DNA from: Dimorphilus gyrociliatus
Taxonomy: Eukaryota; Animalia; Annelida
Assembly (NCBI GenBank): GCA_904063045.1
Contig: CAJFCJ010000014.1
Span: forward strand, 1,547,643 to 1,611,642
Length of the DNA: 64,000 nucleotides
Reading direction: 5' to 3'
Each line of letters starts with the position of its first letter. Within the stretch, counting starts at the first letter, position 1. Both the position numbers and the translations under genes were made by a program. Positions 42,544-53,537 of the stretch are shown here, in pieces. The notes beneath the pieces were generated by a model. It worked only from the letters and a program-made list of their open reading frames with translations, was not told where the DNA came from and searched no databases.

Positions 42544-44798
42544 TTAAATTAATAAAAATCTTTCCAAAGCTGCAGATCTTTGTCCATGAATTAGGATAGT
42601 TACTGGAATGAGAGGATGCTGCGTTCCTCTTAAGTAATGCTAAAAGGGGAAACAAAAATAAATAAATAAAAACACAGACAAACAATATCAGGAAAATAAA
42701 TGGAAGGAAAATATATATTTTGTATTGTTATATATGATAGAATAGGAAATAATAATAATGAGATCTTACATGAACCATCTCAATTGCTTTTCGCTTAAAA
42801 GCGGAGGCAGATTGTGACAGCAAAATAAAGCAATGTTGTTGAGTATCAAATATAGTAACGTCATTTGCAAGAATTGTTGATAAAGATGCAGTCTGTCCAG
42901 CACTAATCGGAGTAAAGCTTAGGGGATCAGTTGATGGATTCACACTAAAAAAAATTCCATATTTCCATGCAATATTAATATATAAAAACAATATAAATAT
43001 ACAATAGATATATTGTGTAAATTTACGCAAAAAACTATTTACCTATATATTGCTTTTGTATAATTTTTTATTGTTGAACTTTGGAATTCATCATCTTCAT
43101 CTTTAATAATTCCACTAGCGAATAAACCATCGACAAGTGACGTATAAAAGTAATGCTATATATCAAAAGAAAATTAAAAAGATTTACAGTTATTAATCAT
43201 TTTATTATATAAGATTTTACCTCAAATGTTACTGCAATTTCATCAATAATGTCAACTTTAATTTTAGCCCCTCTGTTGGCTTTTATCTCCTCAATATAGT
43301 TTCTAGCCTACGGGATTAGACAGTATCAAATTGTTTTTCCTGACATTTTTTTTATTATTTTTAAATAGTTACCGCTATTCTGTGATCATTTGCCGAATTT
43401 CTTCCATTCCAGATGCAAAACTTGGTTCCCATGTCTAGAATGTATACAAAATCTGAAGTCAGTTGAGCCTTTTCGGCCGCAACTTCCTTTACTTTGATAT
43501 TGTTCGTATGATCTTTCGGTTTATAGAACCTCAATAATCTGTATTCATATGAGGATTTATCCCTTGTACGTGCAAAGCTTTGCTCAAAGCCGCCTTTCCA
43601 AACGCTTTTAGAAGAGAAAAAGCTGCATTAAGATGACGGTGGAAAAAAAACCACAGAGAAAGACGTTTTCTTTCCTTGTCTAATACCTTATTGGCTGAAA
43701 ATATGAAGTAAACAAATCCGATTCTCTTCCCTGAATTTCCCTATGCAATCTAGCCGTCTTCCTTAATTTCTCATCAAGAATGTTTAATGCCAAAACACTG
43801 ACTACGTAATCTTCCTATAAAAAGGTTAAGTTAATCCCTTAGCCTGAGAAATTTTTCTCATCACGTTTTAAGTACTCACATAAGAGGCTCTTTTACCTAT
43901 CCAAATATGGATATCATACACGATTTCCTCTGAAAACACTTCAGGGCTTGTAGACTGCAAAAATTTAAAACCAATTAAAAGTCTCTTAAGTATCTTACAA
44001 TTCTTGTTTTTTTACTATTAATACGATTACTTCCAATTATCTATATGACGTTTGCTATTGTTAGAATACGTAAAAAAAACCGTATACGTAGGCTTATAAG
44101 AAGAAAGTCATCAGAATATTGAATAGTAGAAAATCTAGACGTACAAAGGTAAAATAATATAATCTCTTACACTTAAAATGATATAGGCATTATCCTCGTA
44201 AAAATTACCATATTCTGTTTCCGGCCAGTAGAATATTCTGTAGTTCTGTGAAATTAAAGAAGTAAGATGTACATGAAAATAAAAGAAAGACTTGTTTTTT
44301 GAGAGAGAGAGAGAGAGAGAGATATCATAAATATCATTTATACCCTAATCTGCCAAATTCTCAAACCATCTTCTTTACCAACATTTTCAAATGGTTCCCT
44401 AGTGTTTGTAAAATTCATAAGACGGGCTACAAGAGGAAGAAAGATAATTATCAATGTCGAAACAAAATGGTGGTAGTTAAGGTTATTTAATAGTAATGGA
44501 AAGAAAAAGTATTAAATCCAATACAAACATTGATACGCTTTCATTACTTCAGGATTATCAACTTTTAAATTTACATCTTTCCATCTGCAAATCTGATCGG
44601 TATGATTTAACATTTTTAAGAAATTATCTCAACAGCTCCACTATTAATGTTGAAGAGAGAGAGAGAAAAAAAAAGAGAGAGAATTTTCGATATGGGCGTG
44701 AACCTTTACCGCTCACGATTTATATTCCAAAAGAATAGACCTTTCGACCGTATTGAACAGTCTCTGTCGTTCATACCGACTTGTATAGAAAATAATCA
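42544..44798 (-). CDS. Divergent three-domain gelsolin-like protein (paralog 3); first exon uncertain
   Basis: Exons encode EPFENVGKEDGLRIWQIR, YGNFYEDNAYIIL, YDIHIWIG, HREIQGRESDLFTSYF, VYILDMG...IWNG, HYLRGTQHPLIPVT; exon layout largely matches the neighbouring gelsolins. Confidence 0.8.
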
Positions 44799-44895: not shown

Positions 44896-46794
44896 TCAGG
44901 GATTGGTTGAAGCAATAAAATGATCATTCTTCTTCCCTTCAGAAATTACTGTAATAGGTCGAAGGGGATTTGCGGTCTTCTGAAGATAACGATGAGCATA
45001 TCCAAAACCATTCCTCGACTCATTTTCCGAAGCATCCTTCCCTATCCATATAAATACAGTATCTCCAACGTCAACTACGAAAACGTCATTCGAGTCTAAA
45101 CTTGATCTACTTATCTCCTCATCTCTGCTGATTTCCATCATCTCCATTTCCCCTTTAGCATCGGATACTCTAACAATATTGAGGTTATTGAATTTAAAGT
45201 TAATTTTGGATGAGATATTAATTAATTAAAGATAAAAAACCTTATAAGAGCTTTTCCACAATCGGATAAATCATTCTCAATATCTCTTTCATCAATTTCT
45301 CCTTCACCGTCGTCTTCGATAACGTCAAAAAACTCACTCTAAATTTATTATATAATTTATCCTAATGAGATGGATAGAGTATTACTTACGTCCAATTCCC
45401 CTTCTTCAAGGTTATGAATATTGACATTTGACCTTCCGATTTTCAATCTACTAACGCATTCCGCAGCCTATTTTCCATTTAGATAATGTTTAATAACTTA
45501 AAAATAAAGGAACTTCAAACCTTCCACTTTTCATTATGTCTACAACTACCTCCGTTCCATTGATAAATATCCGATCCCTTATCCAAAACATAAACATCGT
45601 CCGACGTTACATAGCGTTTTTTCAATGGGATCTTTGCGTTTGTAGTTGGTTAGTTAATTAATGAATAAATATTTTACTACAATTGAGCATTCTTACTTCA
45701 AAACTCTTGACTGTTTTCCCGTAACTTTTAATTCTATAGAGTCTTATTATAAATTCAGTTTCTTCAACTCGGCGAAATCCAGAATCTACGCCACCTTCAT
45801 TAAAGCTATAAAAGGGATATAATAAAGTAAACGTACAACGAGATTTTTAATATCTTACATCATCGAAGGAAAATAAGAATTGAATAAAGAACTCTCGACG
45901 CCTTGAACTTCTCGATGTTGAATAGCAGCATCATTCAAATAAGTATCGAGTTCAACAGTCTTATAAGCAGCTGTTCCATATTCATCCTATATAAGAAATA
46001 TAGTTAAATAGACATTTCGACAGAATCGTCTATTTCTTTTTTTTTATTTTTACTTGAGAGCTATTTTTACCAATCCAAAAATGGACGTCGTAATTAAGAG
46101 CGTCACTTTCTTCATCTTTGAATGTCTATTAAAACATAAGAAAGAAGATAAGAAACCTAAAAATTGAAAAGAATATAAAATATAAAGCTGAACGTTTAGA
46201 ATGATGTAGGAATCTCCTGAGAAGAATTCTCCATATTTCTCTTCAGGCCAATCGGTAACTTGAAACTTCTGTGGGAGTAAAGTATATCTTGTGTTGAATA
46301 ACTGTCTATTTGTGTGTATATACATATATTAATATTTCTGTAGGTTCATAACAAATAAAGTCCGAAAAATGATTAAACAAATAGAACTTTTTTTAATATA
46401 AAAAGAATGAAGGGAAATCCTATGCTTTTACTCTCGTCATAGATATTATGTATACATTGACTAGTTATTCTATATTTACATTATGAATCAATTAATAATT
46501 AATGAATATTCATTGATTTACCAATATTATTTTTTATTAGTTTAAGAATGTATACTTTACCATTATTCTCCATACTTTTAATCCAACATTTTCTCCGGCA
46601 CCTTCCCAAGCTGGTTCTTGATTGGCAGACTCCTCTATTGCAATTATAAATTCTCTTTTATTGACCTATTATTCTAGGTTTTTTTTTATTTTTATTATAT
46701 AAGATAACATACTTTTAACTTTCTTTTCAGTATCCGATCCGAAAAGAGATAGATTCGTATCTTTCCAATTGTAGCTTTTCGCTTTGATAGACAT
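44896..46794 (-). CDS. Three-domain gelsolin-like (severin/EWAM-type) protein (paralog 2)
   Basis: [88 protein letters not shown]. Only one copy of the DEYG exon. Confidence 0.95.
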
Positions 46795-48185
46795 AGCTCG
46801 AATATTGAAGTTTTCTAGAGAAACAACTATCAATTAATGAAAAATCTTCTATTAAAATCAATATGATCAATAAAAAAAAAGTTAACAATAATTTATTAAA
46901 AGCCTTGATTCACCTGGAAAAAATTTATCTCGCCACGTTTATTTATTTAATGACTTAATTTTATTGAATGGTAGCATTGATGGATTAATAGAAAAGAGAG
47001 AGAGAGAGAGAGAAACAGGATCTTTTTAGAGTAGTCTATAAAAAAATGATGAAAAAGGTAAATAACAAATGCACACACTACAGCACTACAGTATATAAAG
47101 AGTTGGTATAATAGAGATTTTCGGCTTTGGTTAAATTTATTCAAGTTATCCCTTTGAGTTTTACTCACTTTTATAATTAGAAAACACTTGATTCGGGAAT
47201 ATTAGATTAATGCTATATTCTCAATTCGTAGAAGAGGATGGCTACCGTCTAACTTCTAGAAGAAAGTGTTTATTTTCAGCCATTTTTAATATTATTCAAT
47301 AGGAAAATTTGCTTTGAGATGTTAGCCTATGAGTTTCACGACTAGGGTTTTTTTTATAGCAACTATGACATTTAGAAATAGGTTACATAAGAGAGAATTT
47401 GTCATCAATAGAATCCTGTTAGTATAGGTTAGAATAGAAACAAAAAGTTAATTGTTATAACAATGGATTATCATAAAGATAATTCGCCATCTGCAGTATA
47501 CATTTCGGATTAGTTAAAGCTAATAATCAGACAAGTTGCAAATACTATTTCTTTTAAACAATAATGCCTTATAAATTTGAATTAAATGATTCATTATTTC
47601 AAACGTTTTGAACTATTTGCAGTAATAATACCAACACCTCTTCAAATTCTATTTTTAGATGGTTAGTGGTAAGTTTACGATATTCTCATCATTCATTTAC
47701 AATTTTTTCAATCAATTAGCTTATTTGTTACACAGCTTTTAGATTAATTAAACAGATTACCAAATAATTTAGAGATGCAAGGATAGGATTTTCTCTTTTG
47801 TATTTATGTAAGACAGCTCCTTCTGTTTGTTGAAAAAACTTGATAGACACTATCCACGCCTACCTAGGCCTATGAATAAATTTACAATTACATCTAACTT
47901 TCTGTTACTTTAATTTGTATGAGTTATTTTAAATGAAATAAATGTTTGACAACTCAAAGTTTGAAAGGTACATTTCTGCATAAGCTTGAAGTTTATTAGT
48001 AACATACTGTAAACGATCTAGATACGTAAACGCATACCCAATAAACCACATGCAACTATAATTTCATATTCAATCATTTATCTTCAGACAAAAACGGCAA
48101 AAGTTTTCAATAGAAGGATAAACACATCATAATCATTTTTTTCTAAGGCGAAGAACATGTAGGACAAAACTGACAAATACATAAT

Positions 48186-51100
48186 TTAAGCACTAGTTGC
48201 TGCCAAGAAACGAGCATTCTTCTTTCCTTCAGAAATGACAGTAACCGGTCTGAAAGGATGTGCCGTCTTTTGAATGTAGCGATGTGCATAGCCAAATCCA
48301 TTTTTAGATTCTGCATCCGAGGCTCTTCTTCCAATCCAAACAAAGACGCTATCGCCAACATCAGCGATGAAAACATCGCTAGAATCTAGCTGAGAGCGTC
48401 TAATTTCAGATCCACGACTCACTTCAGTCATTTCCATTTTGCCCGAAGCGTCAGAAATTCTGTTTGTTATGTAACATTAGTAAATACCTAATATGAAAAT
48501 TATATATAAGACCTCATTAGCACTTTGTCATTTCCAGTAAGATCTTCATCTTCTTCTTCTTCATCGATTTCAACATCGCTTTGCTTCTCAAACGCTTCGT
48601 TGAACTTGCTCTGAAAATAGCAGTTGAAATCAGGTTGCAACAAGGTAAGTTAACTAATGCGGCATTGCAATCCGATACACCATGCAATTTTGTTACATTC
48701 TTAATGCAGCAAGGTTACTAATTAAAAAAGGTTCAAAGCAATATTTTCATTTAAATAACGCTTGAAAAGTACGATGAATATATCATGGCGCTTTTCTAAG
48801 TTCCTTAGATCAAGTAATACTTTTTAATCATGGATCAGCAAGGATCACAGCAAAAATAACTACCAAGATATAGAAGACTTAAATACGGTTTGAATACCCT
48901 TACCTCTAACTGTGAATGAGACATTCAATATTATATTATAAAGTAATTGTGTACGAGTGGAACAAGAAGAGTTAGGTGCACTTACATCAGGCTCGATGTC
49001 GCCTTCCTCGAGAGTTTCGCTTCTGGCCTTACCACGATCACCCTTGATTTTTTGGACAAACTGCTGAGCCTTTGAAGTTGAAATAATCTTTAGTTTCAGG
49101 ATGGTAAAAATACAGATATGCATACCCTCCATTTCTCATCTTTGTTACACGTCTGTCCATTCCATTGAAAAATTTCTAATCCCATGTCCAAAACATAAAC
49201 ATCGCCTGAGTTTAAGAGATCTTTTCGTATAGGAATCTAAATAAAAAAAGAATTTCTCACTAATCGTATTTTTAGAGTGAGGATAAACAAACTATACCTC
49301 TACAACTTTGACTCCTTTCTTAGATCCATGAAAGTGGAAAAGTCTATTTCTGTATTCCGTCGGTGTGACATGACGGAATCCAGTTTCAGCACCTCCTTGC
49401 ATAATTCTAAAAAAAATATAAATATTCAGACACTTTGAGAAGAATTAACAAATTTTTGTTTATGCAGAATCAGACTCTGAAAATTTGCAGAATTAATTAA
49501 AAAACTCATATGCTATTTGCAACAATCAGAAGATATATACATATAAAATGTATATGTACATATTTGATAGCAATTTTAGAATAGATTGCAATAGCATAAA
49601 GGCCAAACATACAAAATCTAAGAAGCATTAACAAAGCAAAAGACAGTTGAAAAAAATTAAATTTCCTAGTAAAATTTTCTTAGCTACTTGTGTCTAAACT
49701 CACACAATCTCAGTAAAATATTTTTTGAATAAAGCACTCTCATGATCTTGAACTTCACGATGCTGAATTGGAACATCATCTAAATATGTATCCAATTCAA
49801 CCGTCTTGTAAGCCGCTGTGCCATATTCGTCCTGTTACGGGAGAGCATGCCACAAAATCATGAACAGCTTATTAGTAGGATAAATTTATTTCTCTTCAAT
49901 TATCCCTTAGTTTGTTTAAAGTCAAGTGTTTTTTAGACTATAATGATTCCAAGATTGAAAAGTATTATTTAGTTGCGGGTAAAAAAATATGTTATAGGTT
50001 TAATTTGGTTTATTCTACATCTTTTCAATAAAGTTTGAAGACTCTTAAACTACTATATTCTTTTTTAGTGGAGAAAATTTTTTTTATATATTATTTCTAC
50101 TACTCTTTGTGACTACTAATTACAAAAAAGTGAAAGAGTAACATTGCAATAATCAAACTGCGAGAAAAAATTGAATCCATAAATGATTACCCGTAACTAT
50201 CTAAATCATTTTTCTTTTTGAATCATGCTAGTAAGTTATAAAAAAAACTTTTTAACATAAGAGGGGAGCTAGGGGAAGTTAGGAGGTAACCCAGCCGCAG
50301 TAAAGGGGGTTCATAAGATAGATTAAGCATGCATTTGTGAGATACTACACTTTCTTCTCTCAACTTACATAATTTCAGAAAAGTAAGTTTGAAATAATTC
50401 ACTTTCGTTATTCATTACTTCACGGTGTTGGACTGGAACATCGTCCAGAAACGTATCGAGTTCAACAGTCTTGTAAGCAGCAGTTCCATATTCATCCTGT
50501 GTTATTTGCCCGTTTTTGTGACAAACATGCCATGAAAAAGTGCCTAATTTGTTTACTACACGAAGATATTGACAATGCGTGCAGAAAGACGTTGACAAAA
50601 GAATAATAACCAGGGACAAGGTGACGAAATAGTTTATCTGGTCAGTGAAACTTACACAATTTCTTGAAAATATGAATGGAATAATTCACTTTCATGATTC
50701 TGAACTTGTCTATGTTGTACTGGTACGTCGTCTAAATATGTATCCAGTTCTACAGTTTTGTAAGCGGCTGCACCGTATTCGTCCTTTTGATTGGTAAATT
50801 TTTTTGTTTTTTTTTAAATTACATAGGATTTGGGACAACATAAGGCGTATGAATGGGAAGAAATCGGGATATCTTTACGAAGGATGGAGAATACAAAGTG
50901 TTCAAAGAGACCTTACCTGTGTGCTATGTTTACCAATCCAAAAATGAAGATCATGTAAGAGGGCGTCGCTGTCATTATCCTTGTATGTCTGTTTTGCAAA
51001 TTTCATTGTTAATAACAGCTAAAGTAAAAAAAAAATAAAAGTAAAAGAAATATTTTTTATTACGTTCAAAATAATGTAAGAGTCTCCGGAGAAGAATTGT

Positions 51101-51835
51101 CCATATTGCTCTTTAGGCCAATCGGTAACCTTAAATTTCTGTTGAAGGAATTTTTATAAAAAAAGCTAATGTAAATGACTTTCAAAAAGATTTTTTTTTG
51201 TTACTGATACATGTCAATACTTTATGCTTATAACCTTTTTATCAATATGTTAAATAGGAAAAGGAGCTATGTTAATTTCTGATGGTAATTATATTATAAG
51301 ATTATTTTTACATTTTATTTGAGATTATATCTATCTATCTATCTATATAATTATGCATATTATGTATATTCAAGAAGCGATTACTAATATAGGAATTTTC
51401 TATTGAAGAGTCATGGCATAAAATGTGCTTTATAATAACTATAGATTGAGAAGTATAAATAAATACTTCAAAAAATTACAGTGTAATGCAAATAGTGTGT
51501 TAGACGAAGTTCTTTCAACATTTCAACATATGTTTTTTTTGTTTTAATTCAACAGCTACATATAAACAAATTTTTAGAAATTGCTTCACCAAAATAAAAA
51601 TGTCTTACCACAATTCGCCAAATTTTCAAACCGGGTTTCTCACCGCATCCTCTCCATGCAGGCTCAGACTCAGCCGATTCCTCTGATATAAAGAAGAAAC
51701 ATTATTATAAAAATGCTTTTACAAAATTATTTAATAAAATTTATTACTTTTAACTTGTTTTTCTGTATCAGACCCAAAGAGAGCGAGATTCGAATCTTTC
51801 CAGTCGTATTGTTTTGCTTTTACTAAACCACTCAT
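48186..51835 (-). CDS. Three-domain gelsolin-like protein (paralog 1) with triplicated alternative exon
   Basis: [29 protein letters not shown]...EPAW...GLKIWRIV...[13 protein letters not shown]...HFWIG; three copies of the DEYG exon; [29 protein letters not shown]. Confidence 0.95.
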
Positions 51836-53537
51836 ATTGAAAATATTTCTAACGTTTTAAATCTGTTGTGATCATTAACAAATGTGTGAATAAAATAAAG
51901 CATCAAGTTCATAAATAGAAAATAACCGGCCTCATAATAAAGGTTAATAATCAATACACGGCCACGAATACAAACAATGACTCATCAAGCTTATAGTTCT
52001 ACCTTTTTTTCTAGGCTTAACAGATTTTTACGACCTTTTCTTCATATTGATGTAAAACTTAAAATGTAGTGATAAAATGAGCTTATCTACGATATGCCTT
52101 TAGACGAAAATCTGGGTTAACGTCTGCAATCTGTCTGCATTCCACCCAGTTTAAGGAGGCTGCACACGCTATTTTGTAGGCTGAAATTTGCTAGGATGAT
52201 TGTGTACCAAATAGACTTTATATAATGGGCTTTTAATAGCTTGCTATCTAATATCTGCTTAAATAGATTTTTGGAATGAGCCAAAATTAAGTAACAAAAA
52301 TAAGTATGCAAAAAAAATATCGAGGAAAAGAACATTTTTCATAACATAAATTCAGTGTAGAGATAAGCTTTCTGAATAAAAATACAAAGAAAACTGTACA
52401 AATGATTAGCAGGATGTACTACTGTAAAATTCGATTCAAGAATATCGTTTATTCCGAACAATCCTACATCTATTTCCGTAGTCGTATAAAAATACTGTAT
52501 TTGACAGTATCTAAGGTAAAACTGCGAAAAACGGAGTATATATTCTTATCACTATTTAGTGAATTAAGACTTTTTAAGGAAGAGATAAAAAAAAATGCTT
52601 TTTCTTTAGAAAATCCGGCATAGAAGAAATTAGTCATGGAAAATATCTGAAAATTACATATATTTCGATAACCGTTGATTCAGAAATTAAAATTCTTTTT
52701 TTTATCAATTCTTATCGAAAATATTAAAATATTACTAATAATATTCACTAAAACATTCTATTTCTTAAAACATACGTTCGAAAAACTAGAATTTTTACCT
52801 GACAGTTTTCTATGTAGAATGCCGCCGCCCTAGTTCTTTTTACAATTGTAAGGCCTACTCTTTTAGTATGGTAATAATTCCGCAATCGACCGGTTAGTGG
52901 TACTTTTCAGTTGTTTTGAATGATTAGGAAAAAATTCACGAATTTTATTCATTTTCTCCATTCAGAACAAAAATAATAAGAAAAAAAAGATAATTTTGTT
53001 AATTAAGTAGTAACGAAAAAAATAGATATCAGAATGTAATTCAAGCATATCCAGAATATTTATTGAAAACTGCAATTATTCATTTATAAATTAATAAACC
53101 TATTAAAAAGATTGAATTTTACTTGATTCGTTGTTACAATTTCATGAATTCCATAATGATAATTATAAAAGATTAATTAGGAGAAAAGAGGCATTTCTTG
53201 AAAACCTGAATAAAACAAAACTACAAAAAACTGTGAAATACATATTGTATCATAAGAAAACTGAAACCGGCAAAAGAATCTATAAAAATAATACTTCACT
53301 GAATAACACTTACACAATTTTAAAGATTGTAAAAATTAATACAGTTTTAGATAAACAGCGCCATCTTAAAAAATTTATAGCTATTTTTAATAAAATAATA
53401 AAAAAAAAACTCAATTGTTATTATTTTTCAAAGTTCACACAAGTTTTCAGAAGCGCCATCTCAAATGCTTTCTATCACCTAAAAAAACGTTTATAAATAA
53501 AACAGTCACACAAGCTAGTTATCATACTTTTTAAAAT

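Follow-up and report, generated by a model that had tools for sequence, protein, structure and literature searches.

Gelsolin domain 1 (G1) is the best-studied actin-severing module, and more than one protein can come from a single gelsolin gene. In vertebrates and insects, plasma and cytoplasmic gelsolin differ through the choice of promoter and of 5' exons, by which a signal peptide is added. Among annelids, the earthworm actin modulator (EWAM) is a 40-kDa three-domain gelsolin relative with named isoforms, and EWAM-P1/P2 of Lumbricus terrestris ("gelsolin-like protein 1/2") are the source of the family names. Mutually exclusive exons (MXEs) are another way of drawing several proteins from one gene, as in the case of exons 5A and 5B of Caenorhabditis elegans egl-15, which are controlled by Rbfox/FOX-1. 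For EWAM, PMC5031758 cites Kruger et al. 2008. Tandem-duplicated MXE clusters have been catalogued (PMC5740500, PMC9741552, and PMC9013439); in general, they consist of homologous exons of equal length and phase with their own splice sites, enter transcripts one at a time, break the reading frame on co-inclusion, and stem from old duplications kept under purifying selection. Here, we describe a cluster that resembles them in these respects in gene 1, a gelsolin-like gene within a stretch of 64,000 nucleotides (nt) from the annelid Dimorphilus gyrociliatus (contig CAJFCJ010000014.1, positions 1,547,643 to 1,611,642; the whole stretch is called the window). It differs from them in gene and site, and three copies are less common than two. 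Like vertebrate and insect gelsolin, the gene would yield several proteins, but the isoforms of the former leave the G1 core unswapped.

Exon 5 of gene 1, which encodes the second half of G1, is present in three tandem copies, A, B, and C. We consider it probable that exactly one copy enters each transcript, giving three isoforms under the control of conserved intronic elements. The cluster is solid for B and C and very probable for A, and would represent an ordinary type of splicing at a previously undescribed site. An earlier note on this DNA had stated that no MXE cluster was known at this position. In agreement with this, a full-text literature search covering gelsolin MXEs, the earthworm actin modulator, and annelid exon duplications found no published account of the cluster, and the MXE papers that were returned mentioned none in the gelsolin family.

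The anatomy of the locus was as the earlier note had described it. Three 128-nt units running from phase 0 to phase 2, with intact splice sites, were found on the minus strand at exactly the coordinates it gave (Table 1), the computed translations matched its own, and the flanking exons 4 and 6 occurred once each. Every copy opens in phase 0, runs 2 nt into its last codon, and has AG before it and GTAAGT or GTGAGT after it. In the Pfam Gelsolin repeat model, which has 76 positions, the encoded 42-residue peptides (plus two bases) matched positions 41-75, and among PDB structures they matched domain 1 of gelsolin, villin, and fragmin (best E-value, 1e-13). Any two copies agreed at 94-98 of the 128 nt, a DNA difference of 23-27%, and at 33-34 of the 42 encoded residues. 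Codon differences between copies were synonymous in 15-17 cases versus 8-9 non-synonymous ones, the synonymous sites were saturated, and the non-synonymous rate (dN) was 0.12-0.14 (Nei-Gojobori), which bears out the claim that synonymous divergence went along with a conserved protein. The locus has the anatomy of a mutually exclusive cluster: its tandem exons are homologous, agree in length and phase, have splice sites of their own, and lie between constitutive exons.

The reading frame sets a further constraint. One copy is the only in-frame state, since 128 leaves a remainder of 2 on division by 3, 256 a remainder of 1, and 384 a remainder of 0, so that the frame is lost with no copy, with two, or with three. 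The earlier note was right that two copies break the frame, but not that three copies restore it: the in-silico product with A, B, and C stops inside B, as does that with A and B, and the product with B and C stops inside C. Thus, exclusivity is stricter than that note had supposed. Transcripts with zero, two, or three copies would be removed by nonsense-mediated decay.

We then looked for exon use in three public RNA runs (X1, X2, and X3), which were compared, as contigs, with positions 48000-52400 of the window. X1 is a coral-tank metatranscriptome whose contigs were mostly 95-99% alike to the window. The library type of X3, which comes from a separate study, is unrecorded; since its contigs were spliced at ten GT..AG introns, with depths in the thousands for exons and of a few hundred for introns, it behaves as RNA of this species. 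Exon 4 was joined to C in both X1 and X3 (49831/50917) and to B in X3 (50496/50917), both joints having GT..AG ends. On the other side, C was joined to exon 6 in X1 (49704/49406), and a loose end at 49704 in X3 spelled the first 15 bases of exon 6. Moreover, a single 185-nt contig of X1 (record 2) comprised 29 nt of exon 6, exon C, and 29 nt of exon 4. The joint from B to exon 6 rests on a loose end at 50369 in X3 that spelled the first 15 bases of exon 6, and an X1 contig containing B had a loose end after 50502 that spelled the end of exon 4. Among the joints listed for the runs, none linked A to B or B to C. B and C are mutually exclusive: for each of them, splicing leads straight from exon 4 into the copy and from the copy into exon 6, and the gene does not use only one of its copies. 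The earlier note had proposed mutual exclusivity for three exons and a search for junctions from exon 4 to each of them; RNA bears this out for B and C, and exon A, for which no spliced RNA was seen, is considered below. In another X1 contig (record 4, window 50370-50502), an exon 91% like B was joined on its downstream side to a different exon (..MEGGAST..). This contig may come from an unknown paralog or from another species; for an alternative exon to be more alike than a constitutive one is odd.

The cluster is also present in a related species, of which contigs (L001, L002, L004, and L005, all from one species) were found by a protein search with the last exon. The DNA identity to the window was ~76% over the aligned stretch, which runs from exon 6 to the 3' end. 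There, the orthologous gene likewise holds exon 5 in triplicate, with order and borders unchanged and with the private residues of each copy retained: Ala at position 5 and HRQVQNH..HSYF in A, HREVMN..QTYF in B, and HREVQDH..LFK.YF in C. In a tree built on all exon copies (128 nt each), A grouped with its ortholog A' (support, 100/99) and B with B' (92/90), and C was nearest to C'. The synonymous rate (dS) across the ortholog pairs was 1.0-1.6, and the dN/dS ratios of the three copies (Table 1) were low, as was that of the constitutive exon 4 (0.019). Judged by these ratios, all three copies are under purifying selection, as had been claimed before the orthologous gene was at hand.

A bare tandem arrangement would also be expected if all three copies were co-included as an internal repeat or if they were assembly or haplotype artefacts. 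We give this virtually no credence. Co-inclusion is refuted by the shifted frame and early stops of products with two or three copies and by RNA joints that link single copies to both flanking exons, and an artefact by the divergence of the copies and by their recurrence in the related species, whose sequence was obtained independently, and in the genomes of three further annelids.

In a further step, we asked what the copies change in the protein. The earlier note had placed the actin-binding helix and HREVQ in this segment, and exon 5 does encode the G1 long helix and the HREV strand according to PDB matches, the fold of a homolog, and the published human structure (PMC5368644). The homolog (P0079) was folded with a 32-sequence alignment and had a mean predicted local distance difference test score (pLDDT) of 86. 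In this model, exon-5 positions 1-16 form a long helix, positions 22-27 a strand, positions 33-37 a short helix, and positions 42-43 the start of the last strand. When aligned to human gelsolin, positions 1, 14, and 26 correspond to Asp96, Asp109, and Glu121. The long helix of human G1 inserts between actin subdomains 1 and 3; Glu97 and Asp109 are G1 calcium ligands, Asp109 binding calcium together with Glu167 of actin; and in the strand His119 faces the short helix and Glu121 is engaged by nearby positive charges (PMC5368644).

A, B, and C differ at 12 of 43 positions (5, 16, 22, 26, 28, 29, 30, 33, 36, 37, 40, and 43). The long helix accounts for two of these, out of its 16 positions, and the stretch of strand, loop, and short helix that follows it for the other 10. 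The equivalents of the Ca2+ ligands Glu97 and Asp109 and the residues at backbone-ligand positions are identical in the three copies, and Glu at position 2, Asp at position 14, and QHR at positions 23-25, present in all of them, are invariant or nearly so among 142 family members. Exon A stands apart at two positions: its Ala at position 5 falls where 134 of the 142 members carry Thr, and its Gln at position 26 where 139 carry Glu; both residues are kept in the related species. Tuned Ca2+ sensitivity or severing, as suggested earlier, is possible but not indicated, since the ligand residues are the same in all copies and the variation lies behind the long helix. The half-domain of long actin-binding helix, strand, and short helix would have been triplicated in tandem long ago, and the resulting isoforms would keep actin binding and Ca2+ ligation. 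Their differences would fall on the strand/short-helix face of G1 and include a Glu that is normally buried and salt-bridged, replaced by Gln in A; such variation would tune activity or regulation and leave the basic function unchanged.

The introns of the cluster were then inspected for elements that may govern the choice. Alignment with the related species revealed conserved islands in otherwise diverged introns (Table 1), and most of the 159-nt A-B intron was conserved; neutral intron was far less alike between the species than block I4. The acceptor of B was the poorest in pyrimidines (0.24 in both species), but since some constitutive exons also have poor acceptors, nothing is concluded from this. 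GCATG occurred four times versus 0.69 expected in the cluster of the window and five times versus 0.75 expected in that of the related species. Three of the sites are at matching positions in both species and flank B and C; in the related species, the distance from GCATG to the C acceptor is 10 nt. Moreover, GCATG was enriched in all five annelid clusters examined, including those of Capitella, Lamellibrachia, and Ridgeia, and Capitella has one site 22 nt after copy 1 and one 3 nt before copy 3. The cluster thus has conserved (U)GCAUG within about 300 nt of B and C, as do Rbfox-regulated exons.

In Rbfox-type control, a downstream site activates an exon and an upstream site represses it. Here, one element lies shortly downstream of B and others lie shortly upstream of B and C, a layout typical of Rbfox-type switches. 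The conserved elements suggest Rbfox-type control and would steer the choice among copies. The likeness to MXEs controlled by Rbfox/FOX-1 lies in (U)GCAUG between and beside the alternative exons at conserved positions.

Competing RNA structures offer another way of setting the choice, with a docking site and selectors as in insect Dscam or 14-3-3 xi, the blocks before B and C acting as selectors. I4, I9, and I5 can pair, and the I5-I9 duplex reached -17.6 and -15.9 kcal/mol in the two species versus shuffled means of -10.2 and -7.4, with z-scores of about -3 in both; the unusual conservation of the A-B intron would fit as well. However, the core GCAUGC is self-complementary, so that any two copies pair trivially. 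Duplex scans of the cluster yielded candidates but no register conserved between the two species: that of the extensions differs, with no compensatory change. No matching element was found before A, nor a single docking site complementary to all selectors. Two alignable species are too few for covariation, and a third close relative is lacking, since the last-exon protein search returned two fragments only, both from the one related species. We therefore regard a choice set by RNA pairing as unlikely.

Several points weigh against the reading of three exclusive isoforms chosen by conserved elements. There was no spliced junction to exon A in X1, X2, or X3. The sole coverage of the exon came from X3, in an unspliced contig (50502-50931) with a depth like that of introns; X1 had none. 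The joints that support B and C have sides of 28-29 letters, which is the maximum for a 31-mer graph at a branch and below the comfort limit, and in runs taken as contigs rare forms can drop out and exon amounts are not comparable by depth. The two rare residues of exon A, at near-invariant positions, could mean relaxed constraint. The GCAUG enrichment was tested against mononucleotide shuffles only, and protein control, although it is the more likely mechanism, could not be separated from RNA pairing.

Some of these points would be accounted for by a two-way switch between B and C, in which A is a relic that has survived by chance with little or no use, or else a decoy or regulatory pseudo-exon with no coding role: the contig that crosses A does so without a branch, and the exon departs from the family at two near-invariant positions. 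A protein search of public collections yielded no A-containing fragment with HRQV either, but this search, made with exon A alone, returned only exon-level pieces of other animals (<=85% identity) and is thus uninformative. In contrast, the frame of A, its AG and GTAAGT borders, and its private residues have been kept at about one synonymous change per site, and its dN/dS is as low as those of B, C, and exon 4; such protection of non-synonymous sites would not be expected of a non-coding decoy. In addition, the three runs examined were small. A two-way switch is therefore improbable, and this conservation at a dS of about 1 indicates that exon A is very probably used somewhere. With three copies in use, the spliceosome would put exactly one of them between exons 4 and 6, yielding up to three isoforms of 370 residues, and A would also be translated, in a stage, tissue, or condition outside the available RNA.

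Other annelid genomes were surveyed, as the earlier note had proposed. Capitella teleta has three exon-5 copies, one of them of 131 nt, and the siboglinid tubeworms Lamellibrachia satsuma and Ridgeia piscesae have two each, those of Lamellibrachia being orthologous with those of Ridgeia; all have AG/GT borders. On this comparison, the exon-5 cluster is not peculiar to D. gyrociliatus but is also found in Capitella and siboglinid tubeworms. Because the deep nodes of the exon tree are unresolved, a triplication shared with Capitella and a separate origin cannot be told apart. The leech Helobdella, Lingula, and the oyster Crassostrea virginica have one copy each. EWAM comes from a clitellate, and the only clitellate examined here is this leech. 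Two observations concern the genomes surveyed. In the Lamellibrachia satsuma protein KAI0221917.1 (423 residues; L003 34183-36885), the first 26 residues of copy 1 are fused to copy 2, a gene-model error that is explained by the duplicated exon. In Lingula anatina (L009 3318-10566), the block of exons 1-4 occurs twice in tandem, ~4 kb apart and nearly identical, followed by the single exon 5; the repeat may represent alternative 5' modules or an assembly duplication.

Exon swapping is also found elsewhere in this family. RefSeq isoforms of oyster "gelsolin-like protein 1/2" (Crassostrea virginica, Ostrea edulis, and Saccostrea cucullata), which belong to the same three-domain family, likewise swap one exon encoding the long helix of a gelsolin repeat. 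In contrast to the annelid cluster, the swapped exon corresponds to exon 8 of gene 1 and encodes the long helix of G2 (residues 224-248), and the oyster G1 exon is single, so that the two swaps are separate events. In C. virginica, the G2 long-helix exons (L010 9672-9761 and 9802-9900) are about 40 nt apart, and isoforms use either; an intron of ~40 nt could enforce exclusivity by steric hindrance. Isoforms of the bryozoan Watersipora swap the last exon. Together with the oyster G2 swap, this indicates that exon swapping arose more than once in the family.

A broader reading is possible but tentative: the cluster may be an annelid-wide three-way switch in G1 with an Rbfox-type readout, giving muscle, nerve, and a third context (exon A, with Gln for the otherwise invariant strand Glu) severing proteins that differ in regulation, with swapping of helix exons having arisen independently in G1 in annelids and in G2 in oysters. 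If so, the helix-strand unit would be an evolvable control module of gelsolin repeats. The locus offers three versions (two of them proven) of the helix-strand-helix half of G1 in an otherwise identical protein, long kept and mirrored in other annelids. As a set of isoforms, they would allow the role of the face behind the actin-binding helix to be studied, and especially that of the conserved strand glutamate. The cluster is also a clean case, from beyond the usual model animals, of exclusivity enforced by the frame and accompanied by conserved GCAUG, and it allows gene models such as that of the fused Lamellibrachia protein to be corrected. The general view of mutually exclusive splicing or of gelsolin is left unchanged.

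Gene 1 as a whole has 10 coding exons, with exon 5 as the cluster and with borders set by spliced RNA contigs, and the in-silico product with one exon-5 copy has 370 residues. This protein was 54% identical to P0079 over the full length and aligned end to end with proteins of 365-373 residues named "gelsolin-like protein 1/2" or "actin-modulator", which occur in molluscs, annelids, brachiopods, echinoderms, cnidarians, and sponges. Family members carry three PF00626 (Pfam Gelsolin) repeats, and the exon pieces of G1, G2, and G3 of gene 1 matched PF00626. By these matches, gene 1 belongs to the three-domain "actin modulator" subgroup of the gelsolin/villin superfamily, and Ca2+-dependent severing and capping by its product are putative.

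Table 1. Coordinates of gene 1, its exons and conserved intron blocks, the exon-5 orthologs, and the tandem paralogs (window positions, except for contig L001 of the related species)
Feature	Position	Strand	Remarks
Gene 1	48189..51835	-	Three-domain gelsolin-like ("actin modulator"); spliced RNA contigs and in-silico assembly
Exon 1	ATG at 51835, end 51748	-	
Exon 2	51682-51609	-	
Exon 3	51138-51064	-	
Exon 4	50988-50917	-	Constitutive, single copy; donor common to the cluster; joints 50917/50496 and 50917/49831
Exon 5		-	One of A, B, C
Exon 5A	50783-50656	-	128 nt; Ala at position 5, Gln at position 26 (HRQVQ); no spliced RNA seen
Exon 5B	50496-50369	-	128 nt; HREVM variant; used in RNA
Exon 5C	49831-49704	-	128 nt; HREVQD variant; used in RNA
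Exon 6	49406-49298	-	Constitutive, single copy; acceptor common to the cluster
Exon 7	49236-49126	-	
Exon 8	49069-48986	-	
Exon 9	48610-48513	-	
Exon 10	48459-48189	-	
I2	50570..50591	-	Conserved block in A-B intron; 21/23 columns identical
I4	50513..50552	-	Conserved 40-nt block ending 17 nt before B; 37/41 columns identical; GGCATG 29 nt before B acceptor
I5	50326..50335	-	TGCATGC; conserved 10-nt element 36 nt after B donor (37 nt in related species)
I9	49841..49864	-	Conserved 24-nt block ending 10 nt before C; 22/24 columns identical; GGCATGC 14 nt before acceptor
Exon 5A ortholog	L001 7036-7163		dN/dS 0.039, dS 1.05
Exon 5B ortholog	L001 7320-7447		dN/dS 0.018
Exon 5C ortholog	L001 7980-8107		dN/dS 0.036
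Gene 2	about 46833-44899	-	Tandem paralog; single exon-5 equivalent at 45859..45986
Gene 3	about 44511-42500	-	Tandem paralog; single diverged exon-5 equivalent at about 43689..43778

The tandem paralogs, genes 2 and 3, have one exon-5 equivalent each, as the earlier note had claimed. In the related species (L001 9625-12750), gene 1 and a gene-3-like copy were found with no gene-2-like matches between them, and gene 2 was either gained in the lineage of the window or lost in the related species. An X3 contig of 2206 nt comprised the last exon and 3' untranslated region (UTR) of gene 1 (48000-48321), intergenic DNA, and spliced exons of gene 2 (to ~46100). It reflects either transcription that reads through from gene 1 or a 5' UTR with which gene 2 reaches back over the end of gene 1, and it explains odd joints seen at a depth of 1212.

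Finally, intron 8 of gene 1 contains a microexon of 6 nt, TTAGAG (48904-48909, minus strand), with the borders cacag/TTAGAG/gtaagg. It was included in RNA contigs of X1 and X3, and X3 also showed a form without it. The microexon and its splice sites are kept in the related species (L001 8897-8902), and its inclusion inserts Leu-Glu between G2 and G3.

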